A stretch of 63,283 nt of DNA, filler included, from Octopus bimaculoides (lineage: Eukaryota), in the NCBI RefSeq assembly GCF_001194135.2. It is 3 parts of 3 records of this genome, joined end to end, with 100 filler letters (N's around TTAATTAATTAA, not from the genome) between each part and the next. Parts side by side here need not be neighbours in the genome. Positions count along the whole stretch, not along the records: positions 1 to 25,158 come from NC_068984.1; 2 more parts are not named here. One strand, 5' to 3'. Under the pieces are notes generated by a model. The model did not search any database and had not been told where the DNA came from. It was given only the letters and a program-made list of their open reading frames with translations. Shown here piece by piece: positions 1 through 32,989 of this stretch. Within the stretch, counting starts at the first letter, position 1, and the number at the start of each line of letters is the position of its first letter. Both the position numbers and the translations under genes were made by a program.

Positions 1-226
1 AAAAGACACCATTTCGAGCGTGGCCGTTTTCGTGCGGGTGACACGTAAAAGCACCCACTACACTCTCTGAGTGGTTGGCGTTAGGAAGGGCATCCAGCTG
101 TAGAAACTCTGCCAAATTAGACTGGAGCCTGGTGTTGCCATCCGGTTTCACCAGTCCTCAGTCAAATCGTCCAACCCATGCTAGCATGGAAAGTGGACGT
201 TAAACGATGATGATGATGATGATGAT
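1..226 (+). mobile_element. 3' end of a young RTE-clade LINE or its partner SINE, with (GAT)n tail
   Basis: Ends ...CCAACCCATGCTAGCATGGAAAGTGGACGTTAAAC(GAT)7; same 3' end as the RTE LINE at 8222 (minus) and nearly identical to 20680-20906. Confidence 0.75.
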
Positions 227-229
227 GTG

Positions 230-2830: not shown

Positions 2831-3055
2831 TCTTTTACTTGTTTCAATCATTTGACTGTGGCCATGCTGGAGCACCACCTTTAGTTGAAGAAATCGACCC
2901 TCACAATTTATTCTTTGTAAGCCTAGTATTTATTCTATTGGTTTCTTTTGCCAAACCTCTAAGTCGTGGGGATATAACTACACCAACATCGGTTGTCAAG
3001 TGATGGCAGGGAGACAAACACAGACACACACAAATATATACATATATATATGTAT
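2831..3055 (-). mobile_element. 3' half of family A SINE
   Basis: CTTTTACTTGTTTCAATCATTTGACTGTGGCCATGCTGGAGCACC...; homologous to 34676 and 48160 copies. Confidence 0.8.
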
Positions 3056-3062
3056 ATTTGCT

Positions 3063-3396: not shown

Positions 3397-4176
3397 CACT
3401 ATATATGTATATATATATATATATATAAAGAAGTCCAGCTTATTGTTTGTATCACGACAGAACGCACGCGTTAACCTTTATACAGTAAGTTTAAACTATT
3501 TTTTTAACGCGACTCTGTCTATCTCTATATCTATCTCCCCCTCTCATTCTTCCCTCTACTGTTTTTCGCCTCTCCCTGTCACTACTATCTCTCTCTCTAT
3601 CTCTCGCTGCTCGTCCTTCGCCTCTCACTGTTACTACTACTATCTCTCTCCCTCTCTACCTCTCGTTGCTTATTTTCGTTCTTCGACTCCTCAAGCTCGC
3701 ACGTACTTCTTTGCCCCTCCAGTTCGTGCATCACAGCGTNNNNNNNNNNNNNNNNNNNNNNNNNNNNNNNNNNNNNNNNNNNNNNNNNNNNNNNNNNNNN
3801 NNNNNNNNNNNNNNNNNNNNNNNNNNNNNNNNNNNNNNNNNNNNNNNNNNNNNNNNNNNNNNNNNNNNNNNNNNNNNNNNNNNNNNNNNNNNNNNNNNNN
3901 NNNNNNNNNNNNNNNNNNNNNNNNNNNNNNNNNNNNNNNNNNNNNNNNNNNNNNNNNNNNNNNNNNNNNNNNNNNNNNNNNNNNNNNNNNNNNNNNNNNN
4001 NNNNNNNNNNNNNNNNNNNNNNNNNNNNNNNNNNNNNNNNNNNNNNNNNNNNNNNNNNNNNNNNNNNNNNNNNNNNNNCAGTAATGTATCTATATGTAAA
4101 TGTGGATGAAGGTATATACATACATGTACATATATATGCATATACTCATATATTGTTTATATATATATATATATAT

Positions 4177-4540
4177 TGATAGAAAGGACAACAAAAGAAA
4201 GAAAGAGACCTCGAAATGTAAATAGAGGAATTTATCTGTAAAAATATTTGACACTTATTCGGTAGCCATGATAAAACTCCGAGTTTCGGATGCTGGGGTG
4301 GGAACCCACACCGCCTTCTCTTCAGTTATCCGGCCATTGAAAATTCCTGTGAAAAATGACCGTTAAACAAAGGGAAATTACTGTGTGTTTGACCATTATT
4401 AAGACAAAAGAGCTACAGATCACTAAGGGGAGGGAGTAAAGGTAAGGGGGTAGAAAAGTCTATAGTGTTCACGTAAGTGCACCAATCTGTACATTCGCCT
4501 ATATGTATATACTAAACCACCCCTGCTTGAAACACACACA
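4177..4540 (-). mobile_element. Penelope-like terminal repeat fragment carrying a hammerhead motif, 3' end at (TA)n
   Basis: Minus-strand CTGAAGA...CGAAAC motif; ends at the (TA)n run near 4158-4176; same layout at 28589-28700, 37690-37895, 59581-59760. Confidence 0.55.
4263..4336 (-). ncRNA. Type I hammerhead ribozyme fold (GUU cleavage triplet)
   Basis: GATAA-CTGAAGA-[helix II]-GAAA-CTC-G-GAG-T-T-TTATC: helix I GATAA/TTATC, palindromic helix III; helix II imperfect. Confidence 0.65.
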
Positions 4541-5039
4541 TGCTCACCCACATACTCACCAAAAACTATACATATATATATACATGTACATATACATATA
4601 TATACCCACATACACAGGTATACCCGCCTACGCACCCACATACACACGCACTCAACAGCCTTGCACCCATACACACGCACGCATGGGTACGTGCGTATAT
4701 AGATGTATGTGCATGCATGCGAAAATATGCATATATAGACGCGTTTTAACCTTATAGTTTTTTCACACTTTCTTCTGTAATTTGCTTTTAGCCCTATGGT
4801 TTTTGCTTTTTTTTCGTGAACAACAACAACAACAACAACAACATGGAAAAATACCTTAGGAATGAGAATCCAGATTCAAAATTTCCCTAACACACTTTCT
4901 TCCTGTTTCTTGAATAAAAGCTGTGATGGACTGCCATCCCGTCCTGCTGTGGGGAACACATATGCCATAGAAACCGGCAAGGCTTTAAAAGGGCGCAAAA
5001 AAAAAAAATAATAATAATAAGCCAAATCTGAAAGTTTTG

Positions 5040-5570
5040 CTGGGTCTGTGAATGGAAACTGTGTTTTTCTGTCAAGGTTGGGATGACACTAACAGACAAA
5101 GTTCAGCAAGACTTCTCCATCACTTTCCCATTTCTTAGCACAAAAGACCTCAATTTTGATAGTTTGGAGCTCATCCTTGCTGATGATATGATTTTCTTGA
5201 GTCCTTGAAGGATCCACCTTCCACCAACCATTGTTGATGTTGTTACAGTCAGGTCATCCATGAAGGCTCTTATAGATGGTTGTTGCATACCAGATTTCGT
5301 TTGGGGCCCCTAACACTCCACCTCTGCTGACTTGACTACCATGTTCACGGTGAGGGTGAAATGGGTTTCTGAAATGGTGCAGCCAGTTATAATACCCTTT
5401 TCGAGCCTGCGCCACTTGGATGCTGTATGACCAGAAGTGATTCTCCCCTACAAGTTACAATAAGAATCTCGAATGAGGCTGATCTTCCGGTTTAATTATA
5501 TTTTCTATTAGATCATAACCATGGTCTAGGATGAGAAGCATTTTTTGTCCCATCTCCCATAAAAGTCATT
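5040..5570 (-). mobile_element. Non-LTR reverse transcriptase fragment, Hero-like
   Basis: Translates WRRLEKGIITGCTIS...QQPSIRAFMDDLTVTT...RWILQGLKKIISSARM; FMDD catalytic motif; degraded. Confidence 0.7.
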
Positions 5571-5699
5571 TTATGCAGTTCATATCTCTCCTTAGTTTGT
5601 ATTGAAAACTTCAAAAATAATTCTTGCTGTACAAAGTAATCAGGTTTTTCTGTACTGCACCCACCCCCAGGAATCTTCCACCAATTCGTTGAGGAATTA

Positions 5700-8218
5700 C
5701 ATGGAGAAAGAAGAAAAGGCCAAAACTTAGCAAATAGTCCTCAAAGGGGGAAGTGAAAGAGGAGGAGGGTACAGAGCTCCACTCCAAGGACACAACAAAA
5801 ACAACAAGCACAAAAAGCATAAATACAGCCCATTTTATAACCACTCCAACAAGAAGAAGAAAACACAAAAAACTGAAACAGCAAAACAACAAAGCAACTT
5901 AAACTATATGCAAAAAGTATCCATTAACTTCACTGCTGTAAACAAAAATAACAGTGAATTGATGGAATACCTAAATAAAAATAAAATCAAGACAGAAGGA
6001 GAGGAATGAATTTGAGGATTTCATCCTCAAAATTCCAAAGGACTGTGCTAATAAAAGTGTCATCAGATGTGTACAAACAATTCAAGAGAAATTCCCAGTT
6101 AAGGTGAAATTTTTAAAAAAGACGATAGATAAAAACTTTAACAAGGGGCTTCTACAAAACATTAACCTGAAGAGAGGTCTGAAACATCTGGGCTTCTGGA
6201 AATTCAAGATGAGTGATCTTCTTTCTTTCTCCAGTTAACATGATTGTGCTGAGAATACAGTGTGTGAATGTACCTGGCCTGAAGTCAGCTCAGAAGGAAG
6301 GTTCATTGCTCAATGATCTCTGGTCAATTGATATAGATGAGTCATCCATCAGTGAGATGATGATTTTTGGAGTATACATACTAGTTTCTTTTTTCAATGA
6401 CTATGAAATATTCTTATCTCATTGTCTGTCAGGATCAGACAGCAGGGTAGCTGTGCTATTCCAGAAATTCTTACATCTCAAAATATGAGCAATCTTCTTG
6501 GACCTGGACAGTAAGTTGGTGGCCCTGGACATGAATGGTAGTGAAGGTAGCACCTTTAGACTGATGGCCTTTTAGGCTCTGACTGGAGCTGGAAGACTAT
6601 ATTTCTTCAAATATCTTGAAACATTCCTGGGAATGTCTCGCTTTTTAGTATTAGTTGGGGACTGGAATTGTATTTTGGACATATGGAATGACTGTGCGGG
6701 GCTAGTGCATAGCAGGAGCCTCTACAGGAACCATATTAGTGAGCAAGTTAAGTGGCAGTCAACAGGGACAAGCATCAACAACTGATGGTAGGTTGCTCTG
6801 AAGAGGACAATTAGAGTAGAATTGATAGCATTTGACAATGAACTAGGAATTGAAAGCAATAGATTAGAGGGAGAACTATTTTCAAACTTAGAAGAGGCTT
6901 TTAGTAAAGGTATTGTAACTGACATGCTAGTGGTGAGAATGGCCATTGACCATTTCTTTAAGGTGAATCCACAGAGACTGCTTTGTCAGAGCTAAGTCTA
7001 ATGCACTCAAATACGAAGGAACTAAAGTCGTTCAATGGGCCTGAAAGATGGAGACACAACATGACAACAAAACCATGAACAGGTACTGAGTAGGTGTATG
7101 CAACCTTCCAACAGTACTTCATAGGACTGTTTGAGGAGGGTGATGGGTCAGCAGTGGTGGTGGACTTTAGTTTGTACTTGGATGGTCTGTCTTAGCTTCA
7201 GCAAAGAATATAAAGTTCTTCAAAAAGCCAATAACAGCTACTGAAATAGAGGAAGCAATGACAGTTGCACTAGTCACAAATCGCCTGGTTTTGACGGTGT
7301 GCCCGATGAGTTCATGCCAGATTTGTTTGGTAGCCTCTTGAAAGAAGTTTACTGTAACTGTCAGCAGAACATGAGAGTGGTAATGCTGCTGAGGAAGGGT
7401 ACTGACAACGGAGACATGCCAGGGAATTTTCAGGTCATAACCAATAAACACAGAATTTAAGATTTTGACCAAGTTGTTTGCCAAAAGTTGGCAATTGCTC
7501 TTGGTAATCAGAGATGTGCAAATGTGCACAATTCCAAGCAAGTCTATTCTCAACAACTTCCACCTGTGATACATCACAGAGAGGGCTCAGATGAACCCTC
7601 ACTTTTGTGGGGCTTTGATCAATCTGAGTCAATCTAAAGCATCTGATAGAGATGACCATTATTACTTGGAAGCTGTCCTGAAATCAGTTCAGTTCAGACT
7701 TGTTTTCAGAGGCAGGATTGCTGCAACACACAGTACCTGCTTGGGGAGTAAAGTAAATGGTCACCTACTGGTATGTTTTGCATTGCATATTCAGTCTGCT
7801 AGGGCTACCTGCTCTTACCCCTTCTGTATGTGCTGGTTCTCAAGCCCCTGTTATGGAAGTTGGAACAATTCAGGGGCATCCCATTTGAACTAGGACCTGG
7901 GAGGGCAGAGTTGGCATGCATACATGATGTTACTATCATTATGTCGACACCCCTAAAGTGGAAAAGGTCAGTGCCATTCTAAAGGAGTGTAAGTTGGAAG
8001 CAGGGGCCTAAATCAATGCCAACAAGTTGGTAGATTTGCAACCAAGCATCTAGAATGCCCAGCTGATGGACCAGTTAAACTGCCCATGGTCTGGTTTGGT
8101 CCCAACCAGCTGGATAAGAACTGGGGGATAGTGACAAACAGGGTGGCCAGTCTTACCCAGTAATGGACAAAATGGAAGCTGTCCCTGAAAGGGCAGATGG
8201 AGGAGGCAAATTCCTACA
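5700..8218 (+). mobile_element. Degraded L1/Tx1-clade LINE (copy 1): APE endonuclease and RT
   Basis: VNVPGLKS (6260), LVGDWNCILD (6650), SPGFDGVP (7285), QGYLLLPLLYVLVLKPLLWKL (7800), KLSLKG (8177); many stops; cut at 8222 by an RTE. Confidence 0.8.
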
Positions 8219-8221
8219 TCA

Positions 8222-11200
8222 TTGTCATCATCATCGTTTAATGTACGCTTTTCATACTGGCATGAGTTGGATGGTTTGACTGAAAACTAATAAGCCAGGG
8301 AGTGGCATCAAGTTTCAGTCTGATTTGGCAAGGTTTCTATGGCTGGATGCCCTTCCTAATACCAACCACTCCAAAAGTGTAGTGGGTGCTTTTTACATGT
8401 CACTGGCACAGGTGCCAATGACATGACATCAGCCACAACTATGATCTTACTTAGCTTGACAGGTCAACACAAGCACAGTATATCACCAAAGGTCTTGGTC
8501 ACCTGTCACTGCCTCTGTAAGGCCCAACACTCGAACGGTGGTGTTTACGTGTCACTGGCACAGGTGCCAGTCAGACGGCACTGGCATCGGCCATGACAAC
8601 AATTTCGCTTGGCTTGACAGGTCTTCTCAAGCACAGCATATCACCCAAAATTTGAAGGGTATTTTTTATGTGCCAGTTAAGTGACACTGGCGTCAGCTAC
8701 GACTATGATCTCACTTGGCTTGACGAGTCTTCTCAAGCACAGTATATCACCAAAGGTCTCGATCACTTGTCATTGCCTCCATGGGGCCCAACGTTCAAAG
8801 ATCATGGTTCACCAACTCATTCCATGTTTTCCTTGTTCTACCTCTTCCACAGGTTCTCTCCACCGTTAGAGTGCAACACTTCTTCACACTGCTGTCCTTG
8901 TCCATACATATCCCATGACCATACCAATGCAGTTGTCCCTCTTGTACACCACATCTGATACCTCTTATGTCCAACTTTTCTCTCAGGATGCTTACACTCT
9001 GTCATGCATGCACACTGACATAACACATCCAGTGATGCATATTAGCTTCATTTCTTACAAGCCTATGCATGTCCTAGGCACAGCCCATGTTTCACTACTG
9101 TATAGCATGGCTGTTCGCACACAGGCATCATACAGTCTGCCTTTCACACTGAGGGGGAGGCCCTTTGTTACAAGCAGAGGTAGGAGCTCTCTGAACTTTG
9201 CCCAGCCTATTCTTATTTTAGCAGCTACACTCTCAGAGCATCAACCCCCGCCTCTGACTTAGTCAACTACTTCCAGTTTTCCCCTCTGGCATGTGATAGA
9301 GTCTCTTTTCTGTACATTTTTAGTATTAATTGTACCTGTACACCTTCCACACACAAAAATTATTTTCCCTGTTAACCTTCCTCTGATATTGCTGCACCTC
9401 TAATGTGTCCATAGCTTACACTGGGTACATCTTATGGAGTTTCTACTCATGCCTTTTCTACAGATTGAGCAGGGCCATCTACCTGAAGGGAATTGTGATT
9501 TGTCTACTTTCCTATTTACTAAGACTTTGGTTTTTGCTAGATTGACTCTAAGGCCCTTCAATTCTAGACCTTGCTTCCACACCTGAAACTTCTCTAGTTC
9601 TGGTAGTGATTCAGCTATAAGAACAAGGTCGTTAGCACAGAGGAGCTTCTAGGGTTAGCCTGTCTTAAATTCTTCTGTTATTGCCTGGAGGACTATGATG
9701 AACAAGAGGGGGCTGAGGACTGATCCTTAGCGAACCCCTACTTCTACCCTGAATTCTTTGCTATACTTGTTGCCAACCCTCACCTTACTGACAGCAGCCC
9801 TGTGCATATCTTGTACAGCTCTCACCAACTACTCATCTATCCTTAGTTTCTGCATTGACCACCAGATAAGGGATCAAGGGACCCTGTCAAAAGCTTTCTC
9901 CATATCAACAAAAGCCAAGTACAGAAGTTTATCTTTGGCTATGTATTTCTCCTGCAGCTGCCTTACCAGAAATATAGCATCAGTGATGCTTCTCCCAGGC
10001 ACAAAACCAAACTGCATCACATCTAGACTAACTCTCTTCCTAATTAGTTATGCTATGACCCTCTCTGTGACTTTCATCACCTGATCTAACAATTTGATAC
10101 CTCTGTAATTGTTTCTATCTAAGGCATCACCTTTACCTTAGTAGCAGTTGACTATAGTGTTGCTACACAAGTCATTAGGTATGAAGCCTTTGTGTACCAA
10201 CTGGTTAACTATACAGGTGACTAGACCATAACCTACACAACCAGATATTTTAAGCTTCTCAGTGGTGATACTCTATGGGCTGGGGGATTTCCTTGTCATT
10301 ATATCCTTAATTGCATTATCTACCAGGGTACTGTTGATTCAGATAGCTGCTCACTCTGTTGGGTCAACATTTGGTGGACTCTCCTACCATTCATTCTCTT
10401 CATTTAGCAGCCTTTCATCGTGGCATTTTCAAGCCTCTTTCTTTTTAGAATCATTAAATGCAAGTGCATCATCATCCATGCAGACACAGTTCTCTCCTGT
10501 GACATTGCAATTTTCTCTAACATATTGTCCTGCAATTTGAAACACTTCAAGTCACTGGTTGTCACATCACAGAACATTGGCAAACTTCTTTTCTGCTTCC
10601 CCTCTAGTTAAGTATACCAGTCTCCTAGCTTCCCTTCTGGTGATCTGATACAGTTTTCTGCTACCACCACACTTCCAGTCCTTCTAGGTCTGTTTCTTTT
10701 CTCTAATGGTCCTGCCAACTACATTGTTCCGCCACCATGTCACTTTAGGTTGAGAGCGGATTTTGCACCGGCCACAGATCTGGTCAGTAGCCCTCAACAG
10801 GTTGTCTGTAAGAACCTCCATTTGTCTTCCATGCTATATGTTGTTATATCCTTCTCTTTTTCATCAAATGCTTCAAGTAGTACGTCTCTAAATCTCTGTC
10901 CATTCACAGGATACTTAAGTTTCCAGACCATTCTTTTCCTCACTGGTCATCTTCTGGGAAGTCATTTAGCCCTGATTCTGAAGTTGCAAACAACTAACCT
11001 AAGCTGGGGAGGTGCATTCTTCACCTGGGAAAGTTTTGGAATTAATAAGCAGCCATCATTCCTGTTTCCTGGCACGAATGTAGTGAATTTGACTAGTGTG
11101 CCCACTGGACTGGTAGGTGAACAGGTGACTGGCTGGTTTCCTGAAGTAGTATTGCAGATCATAAGGTCATTTGCATCACAGAACTCCAGTAGCCTGGTTC

Positions 11201-11540
11201 CATTATTATCTATCACCTGACCATCGTTGCCCCGGCTACCACTTGATCAAGTTGGAACATCTGTTATATATTTTCTTGTGGAAGGGATGTGTTTCAGTAG
11301 TCAGGTGGTAAGTCTGCTGCTAGCATGGTGGCTTAGGCATACCATGGTTACTGATGCACCAACATGCACTGAAGTTGTGTAATGTGCAATGATTCTTAGA
11401 TGTTGAATGTGTGTGGGCTCCATTTGTGAGGCATATCTTTGCAGCTTGTCTCCTTGACAGAGATGCAGTCCTGATAGAAGAAAAGACTGATATTGGGTAC
11501 TTGACACCTTGAATGTTGTTAGGCACTCACAGCTATCTAC
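8222..11540 (-). mobile_element. Degraded RTE-clade LINE
   Basis: APE fragment NGTRLLEFCDANDLMICNT (ORF 10962-11216), GLRVNLAKTKVL plus Cys-rich motif (ORF 9400-9582), 3' end with GAT repeats at 8222-8240. Confidence 0.85.
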
Positions 11541-11699
11541 CACAGCAATATGATCAGTGGATGTTTCACTTTAGCAATATAGGGTGTTTGAGATAAATTT
11601 GACAGCTTACATAAAAAGAAAAGAAAACACAATATTCCATCTAAAAATAAAAGTATTTAAAAAAATATAAAAATATAAATTTGATTATGGCTGAGAGAT

Positions 11700-12665
11700 A
11701 ACAGCTTACTCAAGGTAGTCACCCTCAGCTTCTACCATGGCATCAAGATGGCTTCAACTTGGTGCAAGCATTCCTCATTGTGTCCTTGGGAAGATCTTCA
11801 AACACCTTGATCTTGGCCACCAGCTCAGCTTTGGTGTTGCAGGCAGAGTGGATGGAGTTTTCTCAACTGTGCCCTACACATAGTAATCTATGGATTTCAA
11901 TTGGGAGAATCAAAAAGCCATAAATTGGGGTTGGTGAAGTTGTAGAGATTCTTTAAGAACCAATTCTGACTCTTTTCAGAGGTATGACAAAGAGCTGAAT
12001 CCTGGTACCACACAGATGGTCTTCCAGCAGCAACCCCCTCCAGCCAGAGATTGGCCACAGTCAGCAGTAGCTTCACATAGCCATCTGAATTAAGCCTAAG
12101 GCCCTATTCAAAAATGTTGGGAAGCATAACATCACCCTCATTGGAGACACACCCAAAGATCATTACAGTTTGGAGGAACTTGGTTTTCATGATAAGTGGG
12201 GCATCACATGGACTGTAAGCAAGCCAGCCACTTGTGTTCTGGGTGTTGTACAACTGGTCCTGGCAGAAGTTCTTTTCATCTGAGAAGAATCAGATCATCC
12301 CAGGCTCATCATGTTGCATCAGCTTGTTCAGGAGCTTCTTTGCCTTCATTGAGTAGTTCTCCTTGATCTTGGCTATGAGAATTTGTCCCTTGTGTCTCTT
12401 GTATGAGTGGTAATAAAGGTCTTCATTCAAGGCCAGCTCCATAATAGTGACTCCAATACCTATCTCTCTTACCAAAGCCCAGATTGCCTTGCTCAGATCT
12501 TCTGTCATCTTGTCCAGCAGTTGTTGCATGAATTTCAGCATGTGGATGCAGTCAGAACACCTGCTGGCCACAGCTTCATAGTCTCTGTTGAAGCTGTCTT
12601 ACAGCTGCAACAGTGTTGACAGAGCATTGAGCAGCCATCATGATGTTGGCATATTGATACCCAGT
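11700..12665 (-). mobile_element. Tc1/mariner transposase remnant (maT/DD37D-like)
   Basis: Minus strand gives WSDEKNFCQD, VMIFGCVSNEGDVMLP, WYQDSA and a degraded SPDLNPMDYYVWG-type motif; frameshifted. Confidence 0.7.
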
Positions 12666-12859
12666 GTGAGTCATTATGATATAAGTAACTCTTTTCTAAT
12701 ATTCAGATGGCTTCCAGTCCTCCATTTCAGCTAACTTTTTGCAACTACAACTTTAATTTGTATGCTCTCTAATGGTATTGTCTGTTCACAAATACAACAA
12801 GCTGTTCCTCAAACAAAAAAAGAAGCATAAAATTGGTCAAATTTAGCCCAAACACCATG

Positions 12860-13500
12860 CATATAGAGGATTAGTTGCAGGAACATGTGGAAATGTTCTT
12901 GGATAAAGCTCTAAGCATTGATAAAAATGAACAGGGACTACAATGGATCATTTCTAAAGTCCTTGGCCTGGCACTGTTACTAAGGAGCACTACCAGTTTG
13001 AGATAAACTATACAGGCATGGATGTGCTGTCAGATGGGCTTGTCTGAGATGTGCACAAAATGATGAAACCATTTTGCATGCACTTGTTTAGTATCTCAGC
13101 ATTGCTGACTTGTGGAGTTATATTGAACACCTGCTGTCATATGTGGGACAGATCCATCTACTGTTCGAGTCCATAGTAGTGATTGTTCCACTCCCTTCCA
13201 TTAATTGAGCAGGTAAGGCAGTTTTCTTGTGTCTGATCGCTATGGCAGAAGAGGTTGTCTGGTGGACGAGGTTCAAATGAAGACAGAGACATTTCTATTT
13301 GGTAGACCCCTCATTGACTTCTTAGGTTTCACTTTGAGGTTTTACTTAAAAGGTACTATCCTCAAGTGAATTTATTGAAAGGTGGATGAAAATGGCAAAA
13401 ATGATAAGAGTGGATGGTACTGCTTTAAGTATAGACCTGTGAGTTGAAGAACAGGCAATAGAGGGGACACTTATGTTTGGTGTTCAGAAACATTTTGGAG
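12860..13500 (+). mobile_element. 3' part of an L1/Tx1 LINE (zinc knuckle), probably continuing copy 1
   Basis: KSLAWHCY.GALPV.DKLYRHG...CLRCAQNDETILHALV, a CCHC-type C-terminus. Confidence 0.6.
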
Positions 13501-13693
13501 AATCACATCATTATCACTATTTTTTCTCCTTTTTACTGATGTATACTATGTGTATTTCTTTATTTTTACTATATACCATGTATATCTTTTACATTTTTCT
13601 TATCATTTCAGTCTATGTAAATCCCTACACTTTGTTTTTTCTTTTGTTTTATCCATTTCATTCCTCACCCCTGTGGCAAACAAAAAATCATTT

Positions 13694-13703
13694 CTACTAC
13701 CAT

Positions 13704-13763
<60 letters not shown>
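13694..13763. repeat. (TAC)n microsatellite
   Basis: Direct reading; explains the poly-Y/L/S ORFs. Confidence 0.95.
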
Positions 13764-13765
<2 letters not shown>

Positions 13766-13769
13766 TTTG

Positions 13770-15480
13770 ATTTTATCTCAGATTTTGTTGGAACTTCTGG
13801 AGTCTTGCATGAACAGTGGACTTGCTGCCTGTAGCCTACAATACCATGCAATCTGTTCTTTTCAACTATCTAATACTTTTCTGATTATTTTGGTCATGCT
13901 AAAGAGGCAAACCTTTTGTAACAGTTCTACTGGGCACTCTGTTCTGATTTCTTTATATTCCTCTTGATGCCTTCTGATACTGTCCCCAAGGACCCAACAA
14001 TAATTGGCACTATTTCCACCTTCTTCATTTTCCATAGCCAGGCTATTCTGTACTTAAGAGGGTTGTATTTATCTATTCTTTTGCCTTCCTTCTTGACTAT
14101 TCATGGGTCAAAGGGGCACACAACATCAACTATATAGCACATGTGGTGCATCTTGTCAACCACCACCAAGTTTGGTCTGTTATGCTCTAACACCTGATCT
14201 GTTTGGATTGGGAAATCCCAGAGGATTTTGCAAGTCTCTGACTCTACCACTCTCTGCAGTTTGTGCTCATACCATGCCTTGCCTTTCTCTAGCCCCACTT
14301 TTTGTACAGTTTCAAATGTTGTGCTTTCACTACCTTATCATGTCACCACAGCTTGTAGTAGTTTTGGGTAAGTCTAGGGCATTCGTTCATGATATGAGCA
14401 ATGGTTTCATACACTCTGTTACAGATACAGCACAGCAGAGACACTTGCTTATTCCTAAAGTTGAACTTCCAATTTGTGGCCAAAGCTTGGTCTTGCACTG
14501 CCAGTATAGTGCTCTCAGTCTCTTTTTTTAGTGTTCCTTTCTTCAGCCAATACCACCTATGTTTTCCTGCAATTTCTGTTGTGGTTACATGGAATTGATT
14601 GTGTAGTCCCTTGTTGTGTAATGCTTCTTCATGTCCTTTTTATACATCTTCCTTTGATTTTCCTTTTTACTCTGCTTTCAATACTTGCTCGTTCCTAACT
14701 GACACTAGCAAGATTTCTTTGCTTTGGGATAGGTATCTCATTAAGCTCTCGAGTTCGATATGTATGTCTTTCACACTTATCAGTCCTCTTCCTCCATTTG
14801 CTCGCTTCATGTATAGATGATCAGTATCTGCACATGGATGATGAGCTTCATGCATCGTTATGACTTTTTGTCTTCCAATCCAGCCCCTTTAGCTCCTCCC
14901 CTATCCACTTCAGGATTCCAGTGCCATACCAAACTACTGTGACCGTGCATGAGTTTATTGTCAAAATTATGTTTCTGACATTCAGTTTGAAACCAATATT
15001 TTTCTCACTTGCCTCAGGTACTCTTTCTTTGTCTTTTCTTTCATATCATTGTGTTTAATTCTATCTGCCTCAAGTATTCCCAGGTATTTATAACTGGATT
15101 GAGGTTCAATTGCCTTCATCATTTGGCATACATATGCCTTCTGTCCTAACAAATTTTCCTCATTTCATTGCCATCATAGTACATTTTGAGAGTCCAAACT
15201 CCATCTTAATATCATTCGAGCAAATCTGCACAGACTGAACTAGGCTGTCTAGTTCTGCCTCACTTTTGTGAACAACTTCAAGTCGTCCATGACTAGCGAG
15301 TGGTTTAGTTTTTCTCTTACCTCTTCCCAGATCATACCCCAACTTTGTCTTTTGTAGTATATCACTCAAGAGGATCATTCCCAGCATAAAGATCAGTGAG
15401 GACACACTGTCCCTCTGGAAGATTTCTCACTTGATTTTCACCTCTCCTAATACCTGATTCTGATTTTCAGCTCAGCCTAA
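13770..15480 (-). mobile_element. R4/Dong-like non-LTR retrotransposon remnant (RT plus restriction-like endonuclease)
   Basis: KILWDFPIQTDQVLEHNRPNLVVVDK...IVDVVCPFD (RLE), LYMKRANGGRGLISV, KSEAELDSLVQSVQICSNDIKMEFGLSKC. Confidence 0.8.
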
Positions 15481-15497
15481 TACCTGGTTCATTGTTG

Positions 15498-15503
<6 letters not shown>

Positions 15504-15552
<49 letters not shown>
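15504..15552. repeat. (TTA)n microsatellite
   Basis: Direct reading. Confidence 0.95.
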
Positions 15553-15553
<1 letters not shown>

Positions 15554-15799
15554 TTGTGTTTGGAGCAAGAAGACACTTGTTCATAACCCATAAGTTTTCT
15601 TTAAATTTTGTTGTTTTATTAGTTTGTATCCCAACTTTTGTTGAACTGTTAACTAAATAACCCAGCTTGCTACAAGCAGGGCCAGCTGCAATGACCAAAA
15701 CTCACCCTTTAAGAGTGAATTTTGAGATTTAAAAATTGCAGATTTAATGATTTAAAAACAAAAATATAAATATGGTTTCCCAAATCTGGTGAACTGGAA

Positions 15800-18700
15800 T
15801 GGCTCTTATGACACTGCTTTCCCACCACTAGATGATGTGGTACAGAAATAAAGCAAAGACTGCAGCAGCAGCAGCAGCAACTAAAGCAGCAGTGACAGAA
15901 TCAGCAGCAGCAGTAACAGAAGCAGTAGCAATGAATAAGATATATTTTAAAATGATGCAAGCATGACATCCACCACTGTCCCCAACACCAACATCAACAC
16001 TACCACCATCACCTCTACCACTGCTACCACCACCTCAAACATTAAATAAAACAACAGCAGCAGTTCCTTTTTCTTAGCAGAAAGGGAACGATTTTGCACA
16101 AACCTGTAAGAAGGTGGAGAAAATCAAATTTACAAAAAATGTTGAGCGATGCTAATATTCACTTATCAAAGACTGGCAGAACAGTTTACCTTAACATACC
16201 AGAGAAAGTGTAAAAAGACATTAAGGAAAAGAACATTATAAATTGATGCATATCATTAAAGAGGAGACTGCAGTAAGTAACAGAAGCCCAGGTTGAAAAA
16301 TGCCTGAGACTGGTCTGGGGTTTAAAATCTTATGTTGCCTGTGGGAGAAGCTTTGATACAATTGAGGTAAGATTCTCAACTGAAGAATCAACCAAGGAAA
16401 ATGCTACAACAACCTTCAAAAGTGAAGAATAATGATTGATTCTGACTTAACTCAGGTGAAGGGTTGTCAAAGTATAGGTGGTGAAGCTGCCCCCAGAAGT
16501 GGACATCTCTCTGTTGATAGCAGTTGTATCATATGGTATGGCGGACAAAGTAAAATTCTGTAAGTATACAAAATGGGAAAAGAGAATGGGTCAGGTACAG
16601 GAATGGAACTGTTGTTGCATGCTGATTTGGGCACTGCTGAAAACATCCCTGGCCTGATCAACCTACCTAGTGGAGCACAATTATTTGTAGCCACATTTGT
16701 GGCAAAACAAACCATTTAAAGGCTTTCTGCCCTATTCAAAGAGAAAAAAACCCCTGCTGCTGTAGACTCTCCCAACACAACAACAACAGCAACAAAAACA
16801 ACAGCGCCACCACCAGCAACAACAATGACACAAGCAGCAACATCCAAAACTAAAGCAACAACAGCATCAACAGAAAGAGCAGCAGGGAAAATCCATTCAT
16901 CAACATCAGCAGCAAGCACTGGTAACACATCGAAGGAAAACAAAAATAACACTTTCACCATCACAGCTGAGAGAAGCCTCACCTGCACCAGACCACCAGC
17001 CAAGAAATGCACTCTGTGCAGACATACCCCTTCTCCTCCGACACAGATTTCCCCAATTGTGTAAACTTGTCTAGCAAGGAAAATTATCTTTGAGACCCAC
17101 CAGAATGGATCCTGGTGAAAGGAAAAGAAAGAAATTACAAAATGAAAAGTGTAGTACAAGACTAAAATCAAAGAGGATAGAGGAGGAGACACAAAAACCA
17201 ACAAACCATCACACATCCACACCATCGCAATTACAAACATCTCCAACACTACAAACACCACCAACATTACAAAAAACCTCAGCAAATGAAAACACAAAAC
17301 AATGCAAACCAACAATGTGAACAACATTCCCAAGATATCACAAACGACAAAAACTTAATAAAACATATTCAAAAATACACAGATATTACTCTAAATGAAT
17401 ACCCCACCCCCATGTAACATCTCTATTCACATAAAAATTATTAGAACAATGCAACAAACTTACAACAAACTGAAAGCAAAATACTCCAAAGGAATGGGAA
17501 ACTTTTGTTGGACTATAAATAAAAGGCCCTACAAAGAAATGCTTGTCAAGACCCACAAATAACCAGGACAGACTATCTGTCTCTACACAAAATATAGGGT
17601 AAGTGATTCTCTTCATTCTCCTTCTCTCTGACAGACATAGCCTTGCTCAAAATACACAGTATAAATGCATGTGGCCTTGGGTTGCCATGGAAACAAGGCC
17701 ACATACTCAATGACCTCAAGTCATTAAGTTTAGATGTAGTGGCTATCTGTGAAACCAGACTCTCTGACTGACAGACATTCATGCCCTCTTTTAGTGGATA
17801 CAAGATTTATCTATGATTATGTCAACCAGGATTGTGGGGTGGAACAGTGGTGTTTTTCCAGAGAGGTCTAGATCTGAAAATAAGGACTATCTCCTTGGAC
17901 CCAGAAGGTAAATTGGTGGTCCTGGATGAGAGCAATAGTAAATAGGGTGCCTTTAGACTGGTGGCTGTTTATGCTTTGACAGGGGCATGCCAGCCAGATT
18001 TCTTCAGCCATCCGGAAGTTTTCCTGAGAATATCTCAACCTTTCATACTAATAGAGGATTGGAGTACCATCTTGGATGCATGCTTGGATTGTGTGGGGCT
18101 AGCTGTTAGAAGAGGAAGTGGTGCAAAAACCTTGCAAACCTGCTCAGACGTTTTCAATTGTCTAACAGGTGCTGACTAGATTTCCCTAATGTGCCAGTGT
18201 GGACATAGACAAATGCATCAGGTCATCAAATTTGTATCTAGATAGAGTATTCTGTAGGCTGGTAGATAAGGACAGTATAAGTTGTTCACTTTTTAAAATT
18301 GTCCGCTACACAGACCATAAATTTGTGATCTGCACAGTTTACCTAGATATACTTCATAGGCCTGGTTAGTGGAAGCTGAATGCATCACTCCCAGCATGCC
18401 AAGTTTCAGAGACCAGATTAACGAATTAGTCAAGTCGGCATTAACGGGGTTAATCATCGACAACAGACAGTTTATTGCCCTGAAAAAGGCAATTAGAGTA
18501 GAATCAATTAGGTTTAGAGCATTAGCAATAGAAAAGAACAGAATAGAGGAAAACTTAGAAATTTAGAAGAGACGCTTAGGAAAAGCATCACAACTGACAT
18601 GCTGGCAGCAAGATTGGCTCTGGATCAATTCTTCAACACTAAGTATGAGTTAAGGTGTGTGCTCTAAGAAATATGGGAACAAAAGTCACTTGATGGACTC

Positions 18701-19541
18701 AAATGGAAGATATGCTACATGACAACAAAGCCACAATTCAGTCTTTAGTGGACCAAAATGTGTGCACAGTACTCAAAGCCCAAGCAGATGTATGCGGCAC
18801 TTCAACAGCACTTCACCCAGCTGTTTGGAACAACTGGCAGCCTGGAACACAGGATGGACTTCAGTGCCTACCTCAATGGTACATTACAACTCACAACATA
18901 AGAGCAGAGCATTGTGTAAGGCCAATAACAGCCATGGAAATACGGGATGCACAGCTATGGAGGGTGATGGGCCATGGAAATATGGGTTGCACAAGGAGCA
19001 AATCACCTGCGTTGGATGGTCTTCCCTACAAGTTTTAATTTCATATGCCAGACTTATTTGGTGGCTTTTTAGTAGATATCTACTGCAACTGGTAGTAGAA
19101 TGGAAGAATTCTTAGTTCTGTGAGTTGAGGAGTGGTGGCACTGCTGAGAAAGGACCCAAACAAGGGGTATCAAACAAAAAATTTTAGGCCCATAACACTG
19201 TTGAATGCAGATTTCAAAGTTTTGGCCAAGGTGTTAGCAAAGAAGTTGGTGCTTGTTGAGGAACTGATTGGTGAAGCACAATCCCAAGCAGATCCATCCA
19301 CCTCATGCGATACATCATAGACAGGAGTCCTGATCAATTTACAGCCTTCGATAGAGTTGACTCCCAATACTTGACAGCCATTCTCATGTCAGCCAGCTTT
19401 GGTCCCATTTTCTGTGGCTTGATTGCTGCAATGTACAGTGACATTTATTTGATAATTCAGGTGAATAGTTACCTATCAGAATCATTCAGCATCATGTGCT
19501 TGGTCATTCAAGGTTGCCTCCTCTTGTTTCATTTTGTCCTG
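15800..19541 (+). mobile_element. Degraded L1/Tx1-clade LINE (copy 2): ORF1-like region, APE, RT up to the QGC motif
   Basis: NACGLGLPWKQGHILNDL (17665), SPALDGLPYKF (19005), LLRKDPNKG..KNFRPITLLNADFKVLAKVLA (19140), QGCLLL (19509); collinear with copy 1; 5' limit approximate. Confidence 0.8.
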
Positions 19542-19723
19542 TTCAATGTAAGATGTTAATAAGGCTTCCACTTATCCGAATGTTCCTCAATGTTCTGTGA
19601 ATATATTGTCTTCCTCGGGTACCCACTACATTCATCCTGTAGACCTTCAACTCATATGTAAAATACATGAAATCCAATTGATTAAACCTATCACTCATCT
19701 GGGAATCTTAGTTTGTATTCAAG

Positions 19724-19917
19724 TGAAGTAAAAATGCCCAAACACGTGACGAAAACAGTTGATGATGAGTTCCGTAAAGTAGCTGATTCAATTCTTCATC
19801 GGAGCCAGTCCAATTCTCTCAAAGTATCATCAGCCCCTTTTGAAATACCAGAGTATCCAATTGAAGAGAAAGAACAGAAAACCTACCTAGAACGTCAACT
19901 AAGGGTCAACAAAATAA
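19724..19917 (+). CDS. AMPD2: AMP deaminase N-terminal coding segment (single exon or retro-inserted fragment); 3' end may run into the gap
   Basis: MPKHVTKTVDDEFRKVADSILHRSQSNSLKVSSAPFEIPEYPIEEKEQKTYLERQL resembles recalled vertebrate AMPD2 ([26 protein letters not shown]) and AMPD3 N-termini; possible acceptor AG 19722-23, ATG 19734, possible GT 19918-19. Confidence 0.72.
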
Positions 19918-20673
19918 GTNNNNNNNNNNNNNNNNNNNNNNNNNNNNNNNNNNNNNNNNNNNNNNNNNNNNNNNNNNNNNNNNNNNNNNNNNNNNNNNNN
20001 NNNNNNNNNNNNNNNNNNNNNNNNNNNNNNNNNNNNNNNNNNNNNNNNNNNNNNNNNNNNNNNNNNNNNNNNNNNNNNNNNNNNNNNNNNNNNNNNNNNN
20101 NNNNNNNNNNNNNNNNNNNNNNNNNNNNNNNNNNNNNNNNNNNNNNNNNNNNNNNNNNNNNNNNNNNNNNNNNNNNNNNNNNNNNNNNNNNNNNNNNNNN
20201 NNNNNNNNNNNNNNNNNNNNNNNNNNNNNNNNNNNNNNNNNNNNNNNNNNNNNNNNNNNNNNNNNNNNNNNNNNNNNNNNNNNNNNNNNNNNNNNNNNNN
20301 NNNNNNNNNNNNNNNNNNNNNNNNNNNNNNNNNNNNNNNNNNNNNNNNNNNNNNNNNNNNNNNNNNNNNNNNNNNNNNNNNNNNNNNNNNNNNNNNNNNN
20401 NNNNNNNNNNNNNNNNNNNNNNNNNNNNNNNNNNNNNNNNNNNNNNNNNNNNNNNNNNNNNNNNNNNNNNNNNNNNNNNNNNNNNNNNNNNNNNNNNNNN
20501 NNNNNNNNNNNNNNNNNNNNNNNNNNNNNNNNNNNNNNNNNNNNNNNNNNNNNNNNNNNNNNNNNNNNNNNNNNNNNNNNNNNNNNNNNNNNNNNNNNNN
20601 NNNNNNNNNNNNNNNNNNNNNNNNNNNNNNNNNNNNNNNNNNNNNNNNNNNNNNNNNNNNNNNNNNNNNNNNN

Positions 20674-20908
20674 GGCACATAAAAGACACCATTTCGAGCG
20701 TGGCCGTTTTCGTGCGGGTGACACGTAAAAGCACCCACTACACTCTCTGAGTGGTTGGCGTTAGGAAGGGCATCCAGCTGTAGAAACTCTGCCAAATCAG
20801 ACTGGAGCCTGGTGTTGCCATCCGGTTTCACCAGTCCTCAGTCAAATCGTCCAACCCATGCTAGCATGGAAAGCGGACGTTAAACGATGATGATGATGAT
20901 GATGATGA
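20674..20908 (+). mobile_element. 3' end of a young RTE LINE/partner SINE with (GAT)n tail
   Basis: Two substitutions versus positions 1-226 by eye. Confidence 0.8.
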
Positions 20909-21065
20909 ACTAGCTCTAGAGCTACTACTATGGAAATTGGAGGCATCCCATGTGAACTAGGATGTGGGTCCACCACATCAGCATACACAGATGATGTCAC
21001 TGTCATAGTGTCAAACACCAAGCACATAGGCCTGGTTGGCATTGCTTTGAAGAAATATGAGGCTG
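20909..21065 (+). mobile_element. L1/Tx1 RT fragment resuming copy 2 (YADD-type motif)
   Basis: LALELLLWKL..GIPCELGCGSTTSAYTDDVTVIVS; matches copy 1 at ~7835-7950. Confidence 0.75.
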
Positions 21066-21469
21066 ATAGATACTGGAACTGAGACTTACATAGTCAGCCT
21101 ACAGAAAAGTGCCATCTTCACTCCTTGATTTTCTTCTTTGGATTCCTACCAGGGCTGATAGTCTCTTTCTTTCACTATTTTGTGTCTAATTCTGGCATTG
21201 TAGTAGACTCCTTTCTTCTGTAACATTTTTATCTTCTTCAAAGTAAAATTTGTTTTCATCTTGGCTATTATTTCTTTTTTGAGGTTTCATTGGCCCCTCT
21301 ACCATTCTATGTTCTTGTTCTACTCTTTTTTTTCTTGCTCAATGTAGTCATGTTTACACTCTTTCATTATTAAGAAGATCTCCAGTTTCAAATGCGATAA
21401 TCACTGTCTTTTCACAATTAGATTTTTCTGGTCTAGAAGTCTTTGATAGGGAACATGTCTTTCTCTTTC

Positions 21470-22849: not shown

Positions 22850-23326
22850 AAACTGACCAAAACTTCTTTGAATTTAATACCAAAACTTTGTGACAACTAC
22901 CTCTATTGCTTACAATAATAGAATTAACAAGAGTCAAGTACAATCACTCAAAATTGTTGGACTTCACCTCATGCAGCAGTGCTTTTCCCATGGTCAGCTC
23001 TGTGTTGGTTGTTCCAGAGTTGGAAATGGCAACAATCTCTACATTCTAACACCAAATGGTAAAACCTTGAGGGTGCTTTGCACCCACAGTGGGACAGCAA
23101 ATGTCAAAAAGGTACCATGGAAGCACTGACAGGCACAATGTGTATATTTTAAACAAATTTTCATTAAAAAATTGTTGATATTAGAATGAGTAGAACATTA
23201 TGTTACCAATGAACAGAAACATGACTAAAGATGTATCAAGGTCCAATATAATTTTTTCATATTGCCTTCTAAAGTAATTTCCATAAAAATGTAACATAGT
23301 GGGCACTTGCCCAAGCAAATATCTAA
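22850..23326 (+). mobile_element. Helitron 3' fragment (PIF1-type helicase C-terminus)
   Basis: INKSQVQSLKIVGLHLMQQCFSHGQLCVGCSRVG resembles Helitron TINKSQGQSL...FSHGQLYVACSRV; possible terminal hairpin TGGGCACTTGCCCA (23300-23313) then CTAA (23323-23326). Confidence 0.7.
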
Positions 23327-31114: not shown

Positions 31115-31309
31115 CATAAAGAGAGAGAAAGAGAGAGACCTCAAGTAGATTCCACCAATCTCTTTATTCTCTCGTGTGGTTTTCTACTGAATTTTGTTAG
31201 AGGTCTATAAGTGTTGCACTGGGATGCCTGCCCATCACGCTTCCGTGCTCTTGTCGTTCATCATAGGCTTTCGTCCTTCCGCCTCCATGGGAGTGGTTTG
31301 TTCATTCAT

Positions 31310-31345
<36 letters not shown>

Positions 31346-32989
31346 GAAACGAGCATTACTCGGAATTTCAACGGTATGGAAACACGGTCTAATCCCGCAT
31401 GTACTCTATGTGCGAAGCCTTAGCCACGGTAAGTTTCGCTTCCAGTTCTGGAGACAAGTGACGCGGAGAAAATTGTCACACACTGCTGACATGAAAGGCG
31501 CAACGTCGACAGAAAGGAAGCAACTCAACCAATATTAAGTTAGTACATATTGACGTTTGGACTTAAGGTCTTAAAACGTGGTAGATAAGACACAAAGGTT
31601 TGTCTCCTTTTATAGGAACGGTGGCGGTGGCGGCGGTGGTGGTGGTGGTGTGGTGGTAGTTAATCCCAGGACAACACTGATCGAGCTATCTTCTGACCAA
31701 ACTCATTTCAGTCGCAGCCATCCCTTCTTTGTCATATGTACTGAGAACAGGACGTATTCTTTTCTGAGACAAAAGAGTGTGATTCGAGTGAGATTTTGTT
31801 GCTACTTTTTGCAGATTAAGCGACTACATAAATGTTCCTCAGTTGATTCATACAGCCTCTGCAGTTCTAATGCGTTTGACAAACAGAAGTGAACATGTAA
31901 AAAGCGAAATTGTTTTGATGAAAAGCAAAGCGTTGCAATAACGAAACTGTTATATGTGATACATTTAGTCAACGTATTTTCCCATTTAATGCTACTTCAT
32001 TTTCCTGAAAAAAAAATATCCCCCGTTAAATCCTCAAACATTTTAACACTAAAATGCCAGTTCTAGAATCCCAATCCCATAACAAAAACCTAAAGTTGCA
32101 AATTATCTATAATACATTAAAAGTCAGTTTGAATCTTGCTTGCTTATAATGCTACCCAGCCAAAATGGTGCATAATGGAAAAATACAATGAATTAAGTTT
32201 ACTCTGAAATGTTAATACAAACAATAAAACAATGTTTCGTGGAAATCAGAAGAGTAGTTATTGAGATGTTCGGAGTTGGGGGGTATAACTACCCAAAATG
32301 GTGCATAATGGGAAAATGTTCCGAATATAACTTCATCCTGAAAGGGAAAAAACCCTAACCTTTCGATTAGACAATGATTTGACAACGAAAGTATACGATT
32401 TGTTTTTTTTTACAGTAAATGTTTCTATTTTCGCTTTTGTTAAATATACTATTTTAATCATTTAGAAATATTTTAAAGTGAATGTGATTTCAAAAATGTA
32501 AGTTGTTTATCCAGTAAGTATTTATATTTTAACTTTCTTTAAACGGACAATATCTTAATGTTTTTTTTAATTATTTTCAAGTGAATACCATTACAAAAAT
32601 CTTTTTTGATATATCTAAAAAATATTTTAAAGCGAAAATGACTTTAAAAATACGGGAAATATTTCGTAAAAGACCCGTTCATAACCTCGGTATGAAATCA
32701 TTTTTTCCATAGGTTTTTTCGAGTGCATTCAAAAGTATCTCAGCTCCAAAAATTTGGCTGCTATTTCTACCACGCCCTGTTACCATGTAACAGCTATTTG
32801 CGATAAGAGACCCGAATTACTTGTTACGTGGTGTGCAAGAAATAGTAGCCAAATCTTTCTTTCCCCGAGCCTTTTACGCGTGAATTCGATGTCACATTCG
32901 TTGAAAGCATACGAAATAACCTGGAAAAGAAAAAAAAAACACGAAACTAAACTCTATTGCTGGGAAACTCAGAGTTTCCTGGTGACCAA

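Follow-up and report, generated by a model that had tools for sequence, protein, structure and literature searches.

A spliced AMPD2 fragment, joined to SINE sequence, interrupts an old LINE in Octopus bimaculoides

The stretch analysed here (the window) comprises 63,283 nt of the Octopus bimaculoides assembly GCF_001194135.2, and the locus of concern lies in its first part, a 25-kb piece of NC_068984.1 (positions 1–25,158). At this locus an old long interspersed nuclear element (LINE) is split in two. Between its parts stand two fused exons of the AMP deaminase gene AMPD2, 16 nt of a short interspersed nuclear element (SINE2), an assembly gap, and a young SINE of a second family (SINE1). A first-pass annotation, made from the sequence alone, had described an AMP deaminase segment embedded between two consecutive motifs of an L1 reverse transcriptase (RT), and had preferred a chimeric retro-insertion, or some other templated insertion, to an exon in its native position.

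The left part of the split LINE (copy 2) occupies 17620..19529 on the plus strand and holds an apurinic/apyrimidinic (AP) endonuclease domain and the N-terminal two thirds of the RT, up to ...QGCLLL; it is an old copy in decay, broken by many stops and frameshifts. The right part (20909..21070, plus strand; LALELLLWKLE...AYTDDVTV...) resumes the RT where the left part ended. A related element (copy 1; 6219..8216, plus strand), with ~68% nucleotide identity to copy 2, is unbroken at the point of the split. Self-comparison by blastn and tblastx finds the two copies colinear over 6219–7253 and 17616–18947; in local alignment 7526–7839 of copy 1 corresponds to 19276–19544 of copy 2, and 7828–7951 of copy 1 to 20905–21019 of copy 2. 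The points at which copy 2 breaks off and restarts thus adjoin in copy-1 coordinates, and the two parts are a single LINE copy that has been interrupted. With the Pfam profile RVT_1 the frame-corrected left half covers positions 3–123 (21.9 bits), and the joined left and right halves cover 3–165 (29.4 bits); for so decayed an element, Pfam searches on raw three-frame translations gave almost nothing and frame-corrected joins were required. The contiguity of the halves in copy 1 and the restart at 20909 had been recognised in the first-pass annotation. The left end, placed there at ~19541, has to be moved to ~19525–19529 (QGCLLL), where homology to copy 1 fades, and the peptide FHFVLF that follows (19530 onward) is already AMPD2 5' exon sequence.

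Two intact database homologues of the host LINE (P0173 and P0174) carry Exo_endo_phos and RVT_1 and are colinear on both LINE copies (by tblastn they map to 17847–19325 of copy 2). Their domains and this colinearity identify the host element as an AP-endonuclease LINE, with AP endonuclease and RT in one open reading frame (ORF) as read through these homologues. Among solved structures the best match is human L1 ORF2p (E=1e-4; R2, E=1e-2), in a set that holds no other AP-endonuclease LINE clade. Its motifs would resemble the Tx1 type, and the L1 of the first-pass annotation, or L1-Tx1, is a candidate clade beside CR1, L2, RTE and others.

The native AMPD2 locus was read in O. vulgaris, in 88 kb of chromosome OX597833.1 that hold the 5' region of the gene (hereafter L001). 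This reference for blastn was reached through a 90% cluster that unites a 57-aa model on the window with a 104-aa O. vulgaris model. Against L001 the window gives only repeats and two single-copy blocks. One is a copy of a non-coding (alternative 5') exon of 163 nt (19530..19692, plus strand; 94.5% to L001 27068–27231), which forms the 5' end of the inserted block. The second, fused to it, is a copy of AMPD2 exon 2 (19693..19903, plus strand; 211 nt, 92.5% to L001 47072–47282) with its ATG at 19734, coding for MPKHV...ERQL; the blastn match itself runs over 19693–19904 and L001 47072–47283 (92.5%). A 20-kb intron separates the two blocks in O. vulgaris; in the window it is gone and they adjoin.

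The borders of these exons coincide with splice sites (junctions are marked here by a slash). In L001 the 5' exon ends ...AAACCTATC/GTAAGC (CCTATC/GTAAGC), and exon 2 is bordered by TTTTTGACAG/ACTCAC upstream and CTAAG/GTGAGT downstream. The fusion in the window reads CCTATC/ACTCAT, which is the exact exon–exon junction, with the intron lost at the splice positions; exon 2 ends CTAAG/GGTCAAC, the AMPD2 match stopping precisely at the donor. The junction k-mers of the chimera are AAACCTATCACTCATCTGGG and CAACTAAGGGTCAAC. Since the blocks are fused at the exact exon–exon junction, a spliced RNA was copied back into DNA. Homology of the 5' exon begins at CATTTTGTCC in the window and in L001 alike, and in L001 an initiator-like sequence (TCATCACATT) lies directly upstream of this start. 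The window copy of exon 2 is preceded by TC rather than AG (before 19693) and followed by GG rather than GT (after 19903), and is thus unable to act as the RefSeq AMPD2 exon or to splice normally. What had first been read as ~190 bp of unique DNA proves to be the 163-nt AMPD2 5' exon (19530–19692) together with the opening 41 nt of exon 2. The comparison suggested at the time, of 19542–19733 with AMPD 5' untranslated region or intron, returned 5' untranslated region, 19530–19692 being 94.5% identical to the upstream O. vulgaris AMPD2 exon.

Within exon 2 identity to L001 is uneven: it is 75.6% over the 41 nt before the ATG (19693–19733 vs L001 47072–47112) and 96.5% over the remainder; for the 5' exon it is 94.5%. 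In the N-terminal linker the window and O. bimaculoides RefSeq AMPD2 share SSGNLSLYSSEVK, and O. vulgaris and O. sinensis have SPESHTLCPSDIK. Decay of the retrocopy and RNA editing were considered as causes of the 75.6% stretch and dropped on account of the SSGNLSLYSSEVK shared with the RefSeq protein; the low identity of these 41 nt thus reflects fast divergence of the linker in the parent gene.

The stop-free frame is AMPD-like, as had been proposed, with the ATG at 19734 instead of 19735. An exhaustive HMMER search with the peptide MPKHVTK...ERQLRVNKIS yielded 19 relatives, one of which (P0003) is the 811-aa AMP deaminase 2-like protein of Haliotis asinina (residues 35–92, E=1.4e-9); Pfam and PDB searches with this peptide gave no match. 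The Haliotis protein, used as a query in turn, led to octopus AMPD2. Translation of the window from 19695 (19695–19901) is identical at 69/69 positions to residues 21–89 of O. bimaculoides XP_014778174.1 and diverges right after ERQL: the segment thus copies a true internal exon of AMPD2. The lack of any amino-acid change over 69 codons also makes it a young copy, youth being judged here at the amino-acid level, as silent differences are not countable from protein alone. The RefSeq AMPD2 isoforms of O. bimaculoides, from a gene that spans 205 kb, begin MDKSADRPVAVAVKRNITT-DSSGNLSLYSSEVKMPKHVTK...ERQL-..., and the O. sinensis protein XP_036366732.1 begins MDTRSLDRPVAIAVKRNLTT-DSPESHTLCPSDIKMSKHVTK...ERQL-SSSPWMHYNE... 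(it contains ...NLTT/DSPESH...ERQL/SSSPWMHY). RefSeq AMPD2 of both species thereby includes exon 2, and the intron-containing structure of the parent was read in O. vulgaris (L001).

Two observations concern how AMPD2 appears in databases. A word-index protein search with a 62-aa peptide gave nothing beyond the 57-aa model of the window itself; the octopus RefSeq AMPD2 proteins escaped it, although 57 consecutive residues in them are 96–100% identical to the query; with short queries a negative from such a search does not equal absence. In the O. vulgaris annotation (L001 10001–78446) AMPD2 is split into CAI9737667.1, a 104-aa 'hypothetical protein', and the AMP deaminase models CAI9737662.1 and CAI9737665.1. 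CAI9737667.1 combines AMPD2 exons 1 and 2 with a micro-exon, and O. sinensis RefSeq joins all of these models in one transcript.

No other AMPD exon was found in the window by tblastn with the 811-aa Haliotis AMPD2, which matches over residues 30–92 only. The same search, together with the Pfam result for the peptide, found no AMP_deaminase or A_deaminase catalytic domain at this locus, and blastn found no colinear flank homology between the window and L001. The product is a dead gene fragment, with 57 AMPD2 codons followed by SINE sequence and no catalytic domain; judging from the SINE consensus, the reading frame would stop a few codons into it. The 57-aa database 'protein' on this locus is an annotation artefact.

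What follows exon 2 in the window is not the canonical next AMPD2 exon (SSPWMHY...), but 16 nt, GGTCAACAAAATAAGT (19904..19919, plus strand), that match the interior of a tRNA-type SINE, SINE2, and are cut by the gap. They agree at 15/16 positions with L001 48918–48933, a site preceded by CATCCTTTCAG/ in intron 2 of O. vulgaris AMPD2, on the strand of exon 2 and 1635 nt downstream of it. In L001 TTTCAG/ is followed by GGTCAATAAAATAAGT, the stretch GGTCAAYAAAATAAGT standing behind TTTCAG/ in the intron-2 SINE copy. This copy (L001 48840–49010, plus strand) is sense in its source-gene intron and belongs to a family of ~10 copies in L001. The family consensus at the acceptor site is TCGGGG, and CAG is present only in decayed copies such as the one in intron 2. 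The window sequence thus begins just 3' of a cryptic CAG acceptor. With the AMPD2 match running to the donor and the sequence beyond it opening immediately behind the acceptor, the best explanation of the join is that exon 2 was spliced into an intronic SINE, as it would appear over the 16 nt that are visible: the exon ends at its donor and the element starts after an internal AG, as in exon trapping. From its age, SINE2 would be expected in intron 2 of O. bimaculoides AMPD2 as well.

Three runs of N occur in the 25-kb piece, and one lies inside the block (19920..20673; 754 N, length estimated), as had already been noted. It covers the junction of the AMPD2/SINE2 part with the 3' SINE1. The gap-free contig 4079–19919 contains the LINE/5'-exon junction and both exon junctions. 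The complementary halves of one LINE copy that they carry support placing the contigs on either side of the gap next to each other. No reading frame is shared across the gap, the left edge being SINE-derived and the right edge a different SINE; a 345-aa 'ORF' at 19713–20750 was rejected, as it merely arises from N read as X in translation.

Beyond the gap stands SINE1 (20674..20908, plus strand), a young SINE with an RTE-like tail, near-complete at the gap edge (by comparison with L001 38568, minus strand), whose (GAT)7GA tail (20886–20908) directly adjoins the right half of the LINE. A sibling on the plus strand (1..227) is 99.1% identical to 20681–20907, has the same internal deletion and is cut by the edge of the piece. 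SINE1 is also ~80% identical to 8217–8409 on the minus strand, the 3' end of a decayed RTE-like LINE (8217..~11300, minus strand) that shows an AP-endonuclease-like N-terminus, an RT (RVT_1, E=2e-22) and a PHD-like finger after the RT (1e-4). The 3' 190 nt and the (GAT)n tail of SINE1 are common to this LINE, which is likely, judging from this shared sequence, to represent the family that supplies the machinery for SINE1. We presume from its motifs that it belongs to the RTE clade. The 'young RTE 3' tail' of the first-pass annotation is thus young, (GAT)n-tailed and built on a LINE 3' core, but the element itself is a SINE, for which the RTE label is plausible only. As separate observations, the 3' untranslated region of the minus-strand LINE contains tandem repeats of ~110–150 nt (8385–8800), and it and SINE1 have the look of a LINE/SINE partner pair.

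Taken as a whole, the locus is most probably an old LINE that was recently hit by a ~1.4-kb retro-insertion, with a spliced AMPD2 fragment and SINE2 sequence at its 5' end and SINE1 at its 3' end. This reading draws on the spliced junction, the exact end at the donor, and the start behind the SINE acceptor, together with flanks foreign to the native gene, a LINE in two parts and a copy that is young. The source would have been an AMPD2 transcript running from the alternative non-coding first exon to coding exon 2 and on into the SINE at its cryptic CAG acceptor. The whole block would then, most likely, have been placed in one event of target-primed reverse transcription by RTE-type machinery recognising the SINE tail, with the (GAT)n tail against the target and the AMPD2 exons carried along at the 5' end. 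The parts could have come together in either of two ways. A single spliced RNA polymerase II (Pol II) co-transcript may have ended in the SINE (exon trapping, or 5' transduction); alternatively, as the first-pass annotation had suggested for an RTE enzyme, the reverse transcriptase may have left the SINE RNA for the AMPD2 transcript. That donor meets acceptor speaks for an involvement of splicing, and would indicate a spliced co-transcript at least as strongly as a template switch; the near-complete state of SINE1 at the gap edge is compatible with a template switch, though not diagnostic of it. Capture at the DNA level, of the Helitron or Pack-type, was rejected, since such captures carry introns.

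Several points weigh against this account. There is no target-site duplication around the block: the LINE reads ...CTCCTCTTGTTT up to its left edge and ACTAGCTCTAGAG from its right edge onward, with no repeat in common, in agreement with the earlier remark that none was clear. A degenerate candidate (CCTGTTC / CTAGCTC) was dropped, because CCTGTTC falls in the AMPD2 5' exon by the O. vulgaris match. Compared with copy 1, ~10 nt of the LINE seem to be missing between the flanks. No A-run is present in the visible sequence, the block ending 3' in (GAT)7GA, with the interior of the gap unseen. The gap (19920–20673) also covers the link from AMPD2/SINE2 to SINE1, across which a single event would have to extend, and the putative identification of SINE2 draws on 16 nt. 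In O. vulgaris blastn against L001 finds no sense-strand SINE1 within ~14 kb downstream of the intron-2 SINE2, so that the co-transcript route needs a species-specific SINE1 insertion. Finally, a second copy of exon 2 would have to exist in the O. bimaculoides genome, as the splice-site argument and the genes of O. vulgaris and O. sinensis suggest.

Because the junction falls within the 754-N gap, the block could instead be the work of two independent insertions: a partial AMPD2 retrocopy made by a poly(A)-using LINE (e.g. L1-Tx1), its poly(A) now in the gap, followed by SINE1 landing at or in its 3' end. A-rich tails are frequent targets for new insertions. Insertions that are both recent and independent do happen in this region, since the SINE1 subfamily is very young and a 99.1% identical copy lies at a distance of 19 kb; recent activity in Octopus is moreover reported for L1-Tx1 families (PMC13282606). 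Yet SINE1 touches the LINE with its tail, with no residual A-run, which would require it to have landed exactly at the boundary between retrocopy and target. The LINE break points match within ~10 nt, as one insertion predicts, and the AMPD2 part and SINE1 look equally young. Two insertions are on this evidence unlikely. An assembly artefact (a chimeric contig or a wrong scaffold join, through collapsed repeats or cDNA contamination) might be suspected, since the assembly was built from short reads, has three N gaps in this 25-kb piece, and both gap-side contig ends lie in SINEs, typical sites of assembly breaks. The LINE/5'-exon and exon junctions all lie within the gap-free contig, however, and the right contig holds exactly the missing continuation of the LINE, unlike a random misjoin; we regard an artefact as very improbable.

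That the segment is simply the native exon 2 of O. bimaculoides AMPD2, with unrelated LINE pieces on either side, is barely credible, even though its translation is identical to the N-terminus of the RefSeq protein and the word-index peptide search gave the window's own model alone. The RefSeq coding sequence requires AG and GT where the window has TC and GG, the upstream exon is joined with zero intron where O. vulgaris has 20 kb, the flanks are without homology to the O. vulgaris locus, and the LINE halves are two parts of a single copy. In this respect the first-pass annotation holds: a chimeric, templated retro-insertion is indicated by the fusion of the 5' exon and exon 2, at donor and acceptor positions, without the 20-kb intron, and neither normal splicing nor unrelated LINE pieces, which it had named as evidence to the contrary, were found.

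The event class, a chimeric, partial, processed retrocopy, is known, and the octopus locus is a new instance of it, in a mollusc. Among mammals, human SVA_F1 carries MAST2 exon 1 and chimpanzee pt_SVA_D6 carries STK40 exon 1, both by splicing capture (PMC6139936). As in SVA_F1, the host 5' exons at the octopus locus end at a donor, are joined at an internal AG and were inserted elsewhere, with the 3' end of the retroelement by the target. The differences are that the host is a mollusc, that a likely RTE-type LINE and a (GAT)n tail take the place of L1 and poly(A), and that the acceptor-bearing SINE2 and the tail-bearing SINE1 belong to different families, with their link within the gap. There is, further, no evidence that the window chimera was amplified into a family. 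That it could be, or derive from, a new composite retroelement with further copies, an octopus analogue of SVA_F1, appears quite improbable; if it were, the promoter-proximal AMPD2 exon would give an RTE-tailed SINE Pol II transcription. The SINE1 sibling at 1–227, its 5' side cut by the piece edge, could in that case be a further member.

Template-switch chimeras are known from mammals (U6-L1 and similar) and, in tripartite form, from Magnaporthe (PMC2104539, PMC4476161). They too fuse different RNAs head to tail in one orientation, with the LINE or SINE part 3' and the cellular RNA 5'. They differ in being normally flanked by target-site duplications, where the window block has none; the fusion point here falls within the gap, and splicing accounts better than a jump for the exactness with which donor meets acceptor at SINE2. 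With the ordinary processed pseudogene (PMC5470649) the block shares an intron lost exactly at the junction, a non-native locus, and its being a non-functional fragment of a multi-exon parent. Ordinary retrocopies, though, are 5'-truncated and keep the 3' end, whereas the window copy consists of only the 5' 374 nt of the mRNA. It also has no visible poly(A), ends in a SINE with a microsatellite tail, and goes back to a non-canonical isoform that combines an alternative first exon with an exonised SINE.

Where 'stringent' LINEs predominate in a genome, each recognising its own 3' tail as the RTE type does, few retrocopies are expected. An AMPD2 fragment on an RTE-tailed SINE represents one way in which host exons still move in octopus, where the LINEs reported as active include RTE, CR1, Dong-R4 and L1-Tx1 (PMC13282606). 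The insertion also preserves a fossil transcript, an AMPD2 isoform absent from the listed protein models, with an alternative non-coding first exon, a start at the exon-2 ATG and a splice into an intronic SINE. For annotation, the 57-aa 'uncharacterized protein' should be left out both of gene counts and of the exons of AMPD2.

Other features of the window stand apart from the insertion. An Rfam search of the window gave zero matches. At 22890–23129 (plus strand) lies a 79-aa ORF containing ...CFSHGQLCVGCSRVGNGNNLYIL..., which has no Pfam match at E<=0.01 and presumably resembles the C-terminus of PIF1/Helitron-type helicases. A short interspersed repeat family is present at 226–472 and, on the minus strand, at 2825–3057, one copy lying directly 3' of the SINE at 1–227; the family has many copies in L001 (e.g. 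17589–17808, 31128–31368 and 32547–32786). Trinucleotide microsatellites at 13690–13770 and 15490–15560 give rise to poly-Tyr, poly-Leu and poly-Ser ORFs, and are mutually related on both strands.

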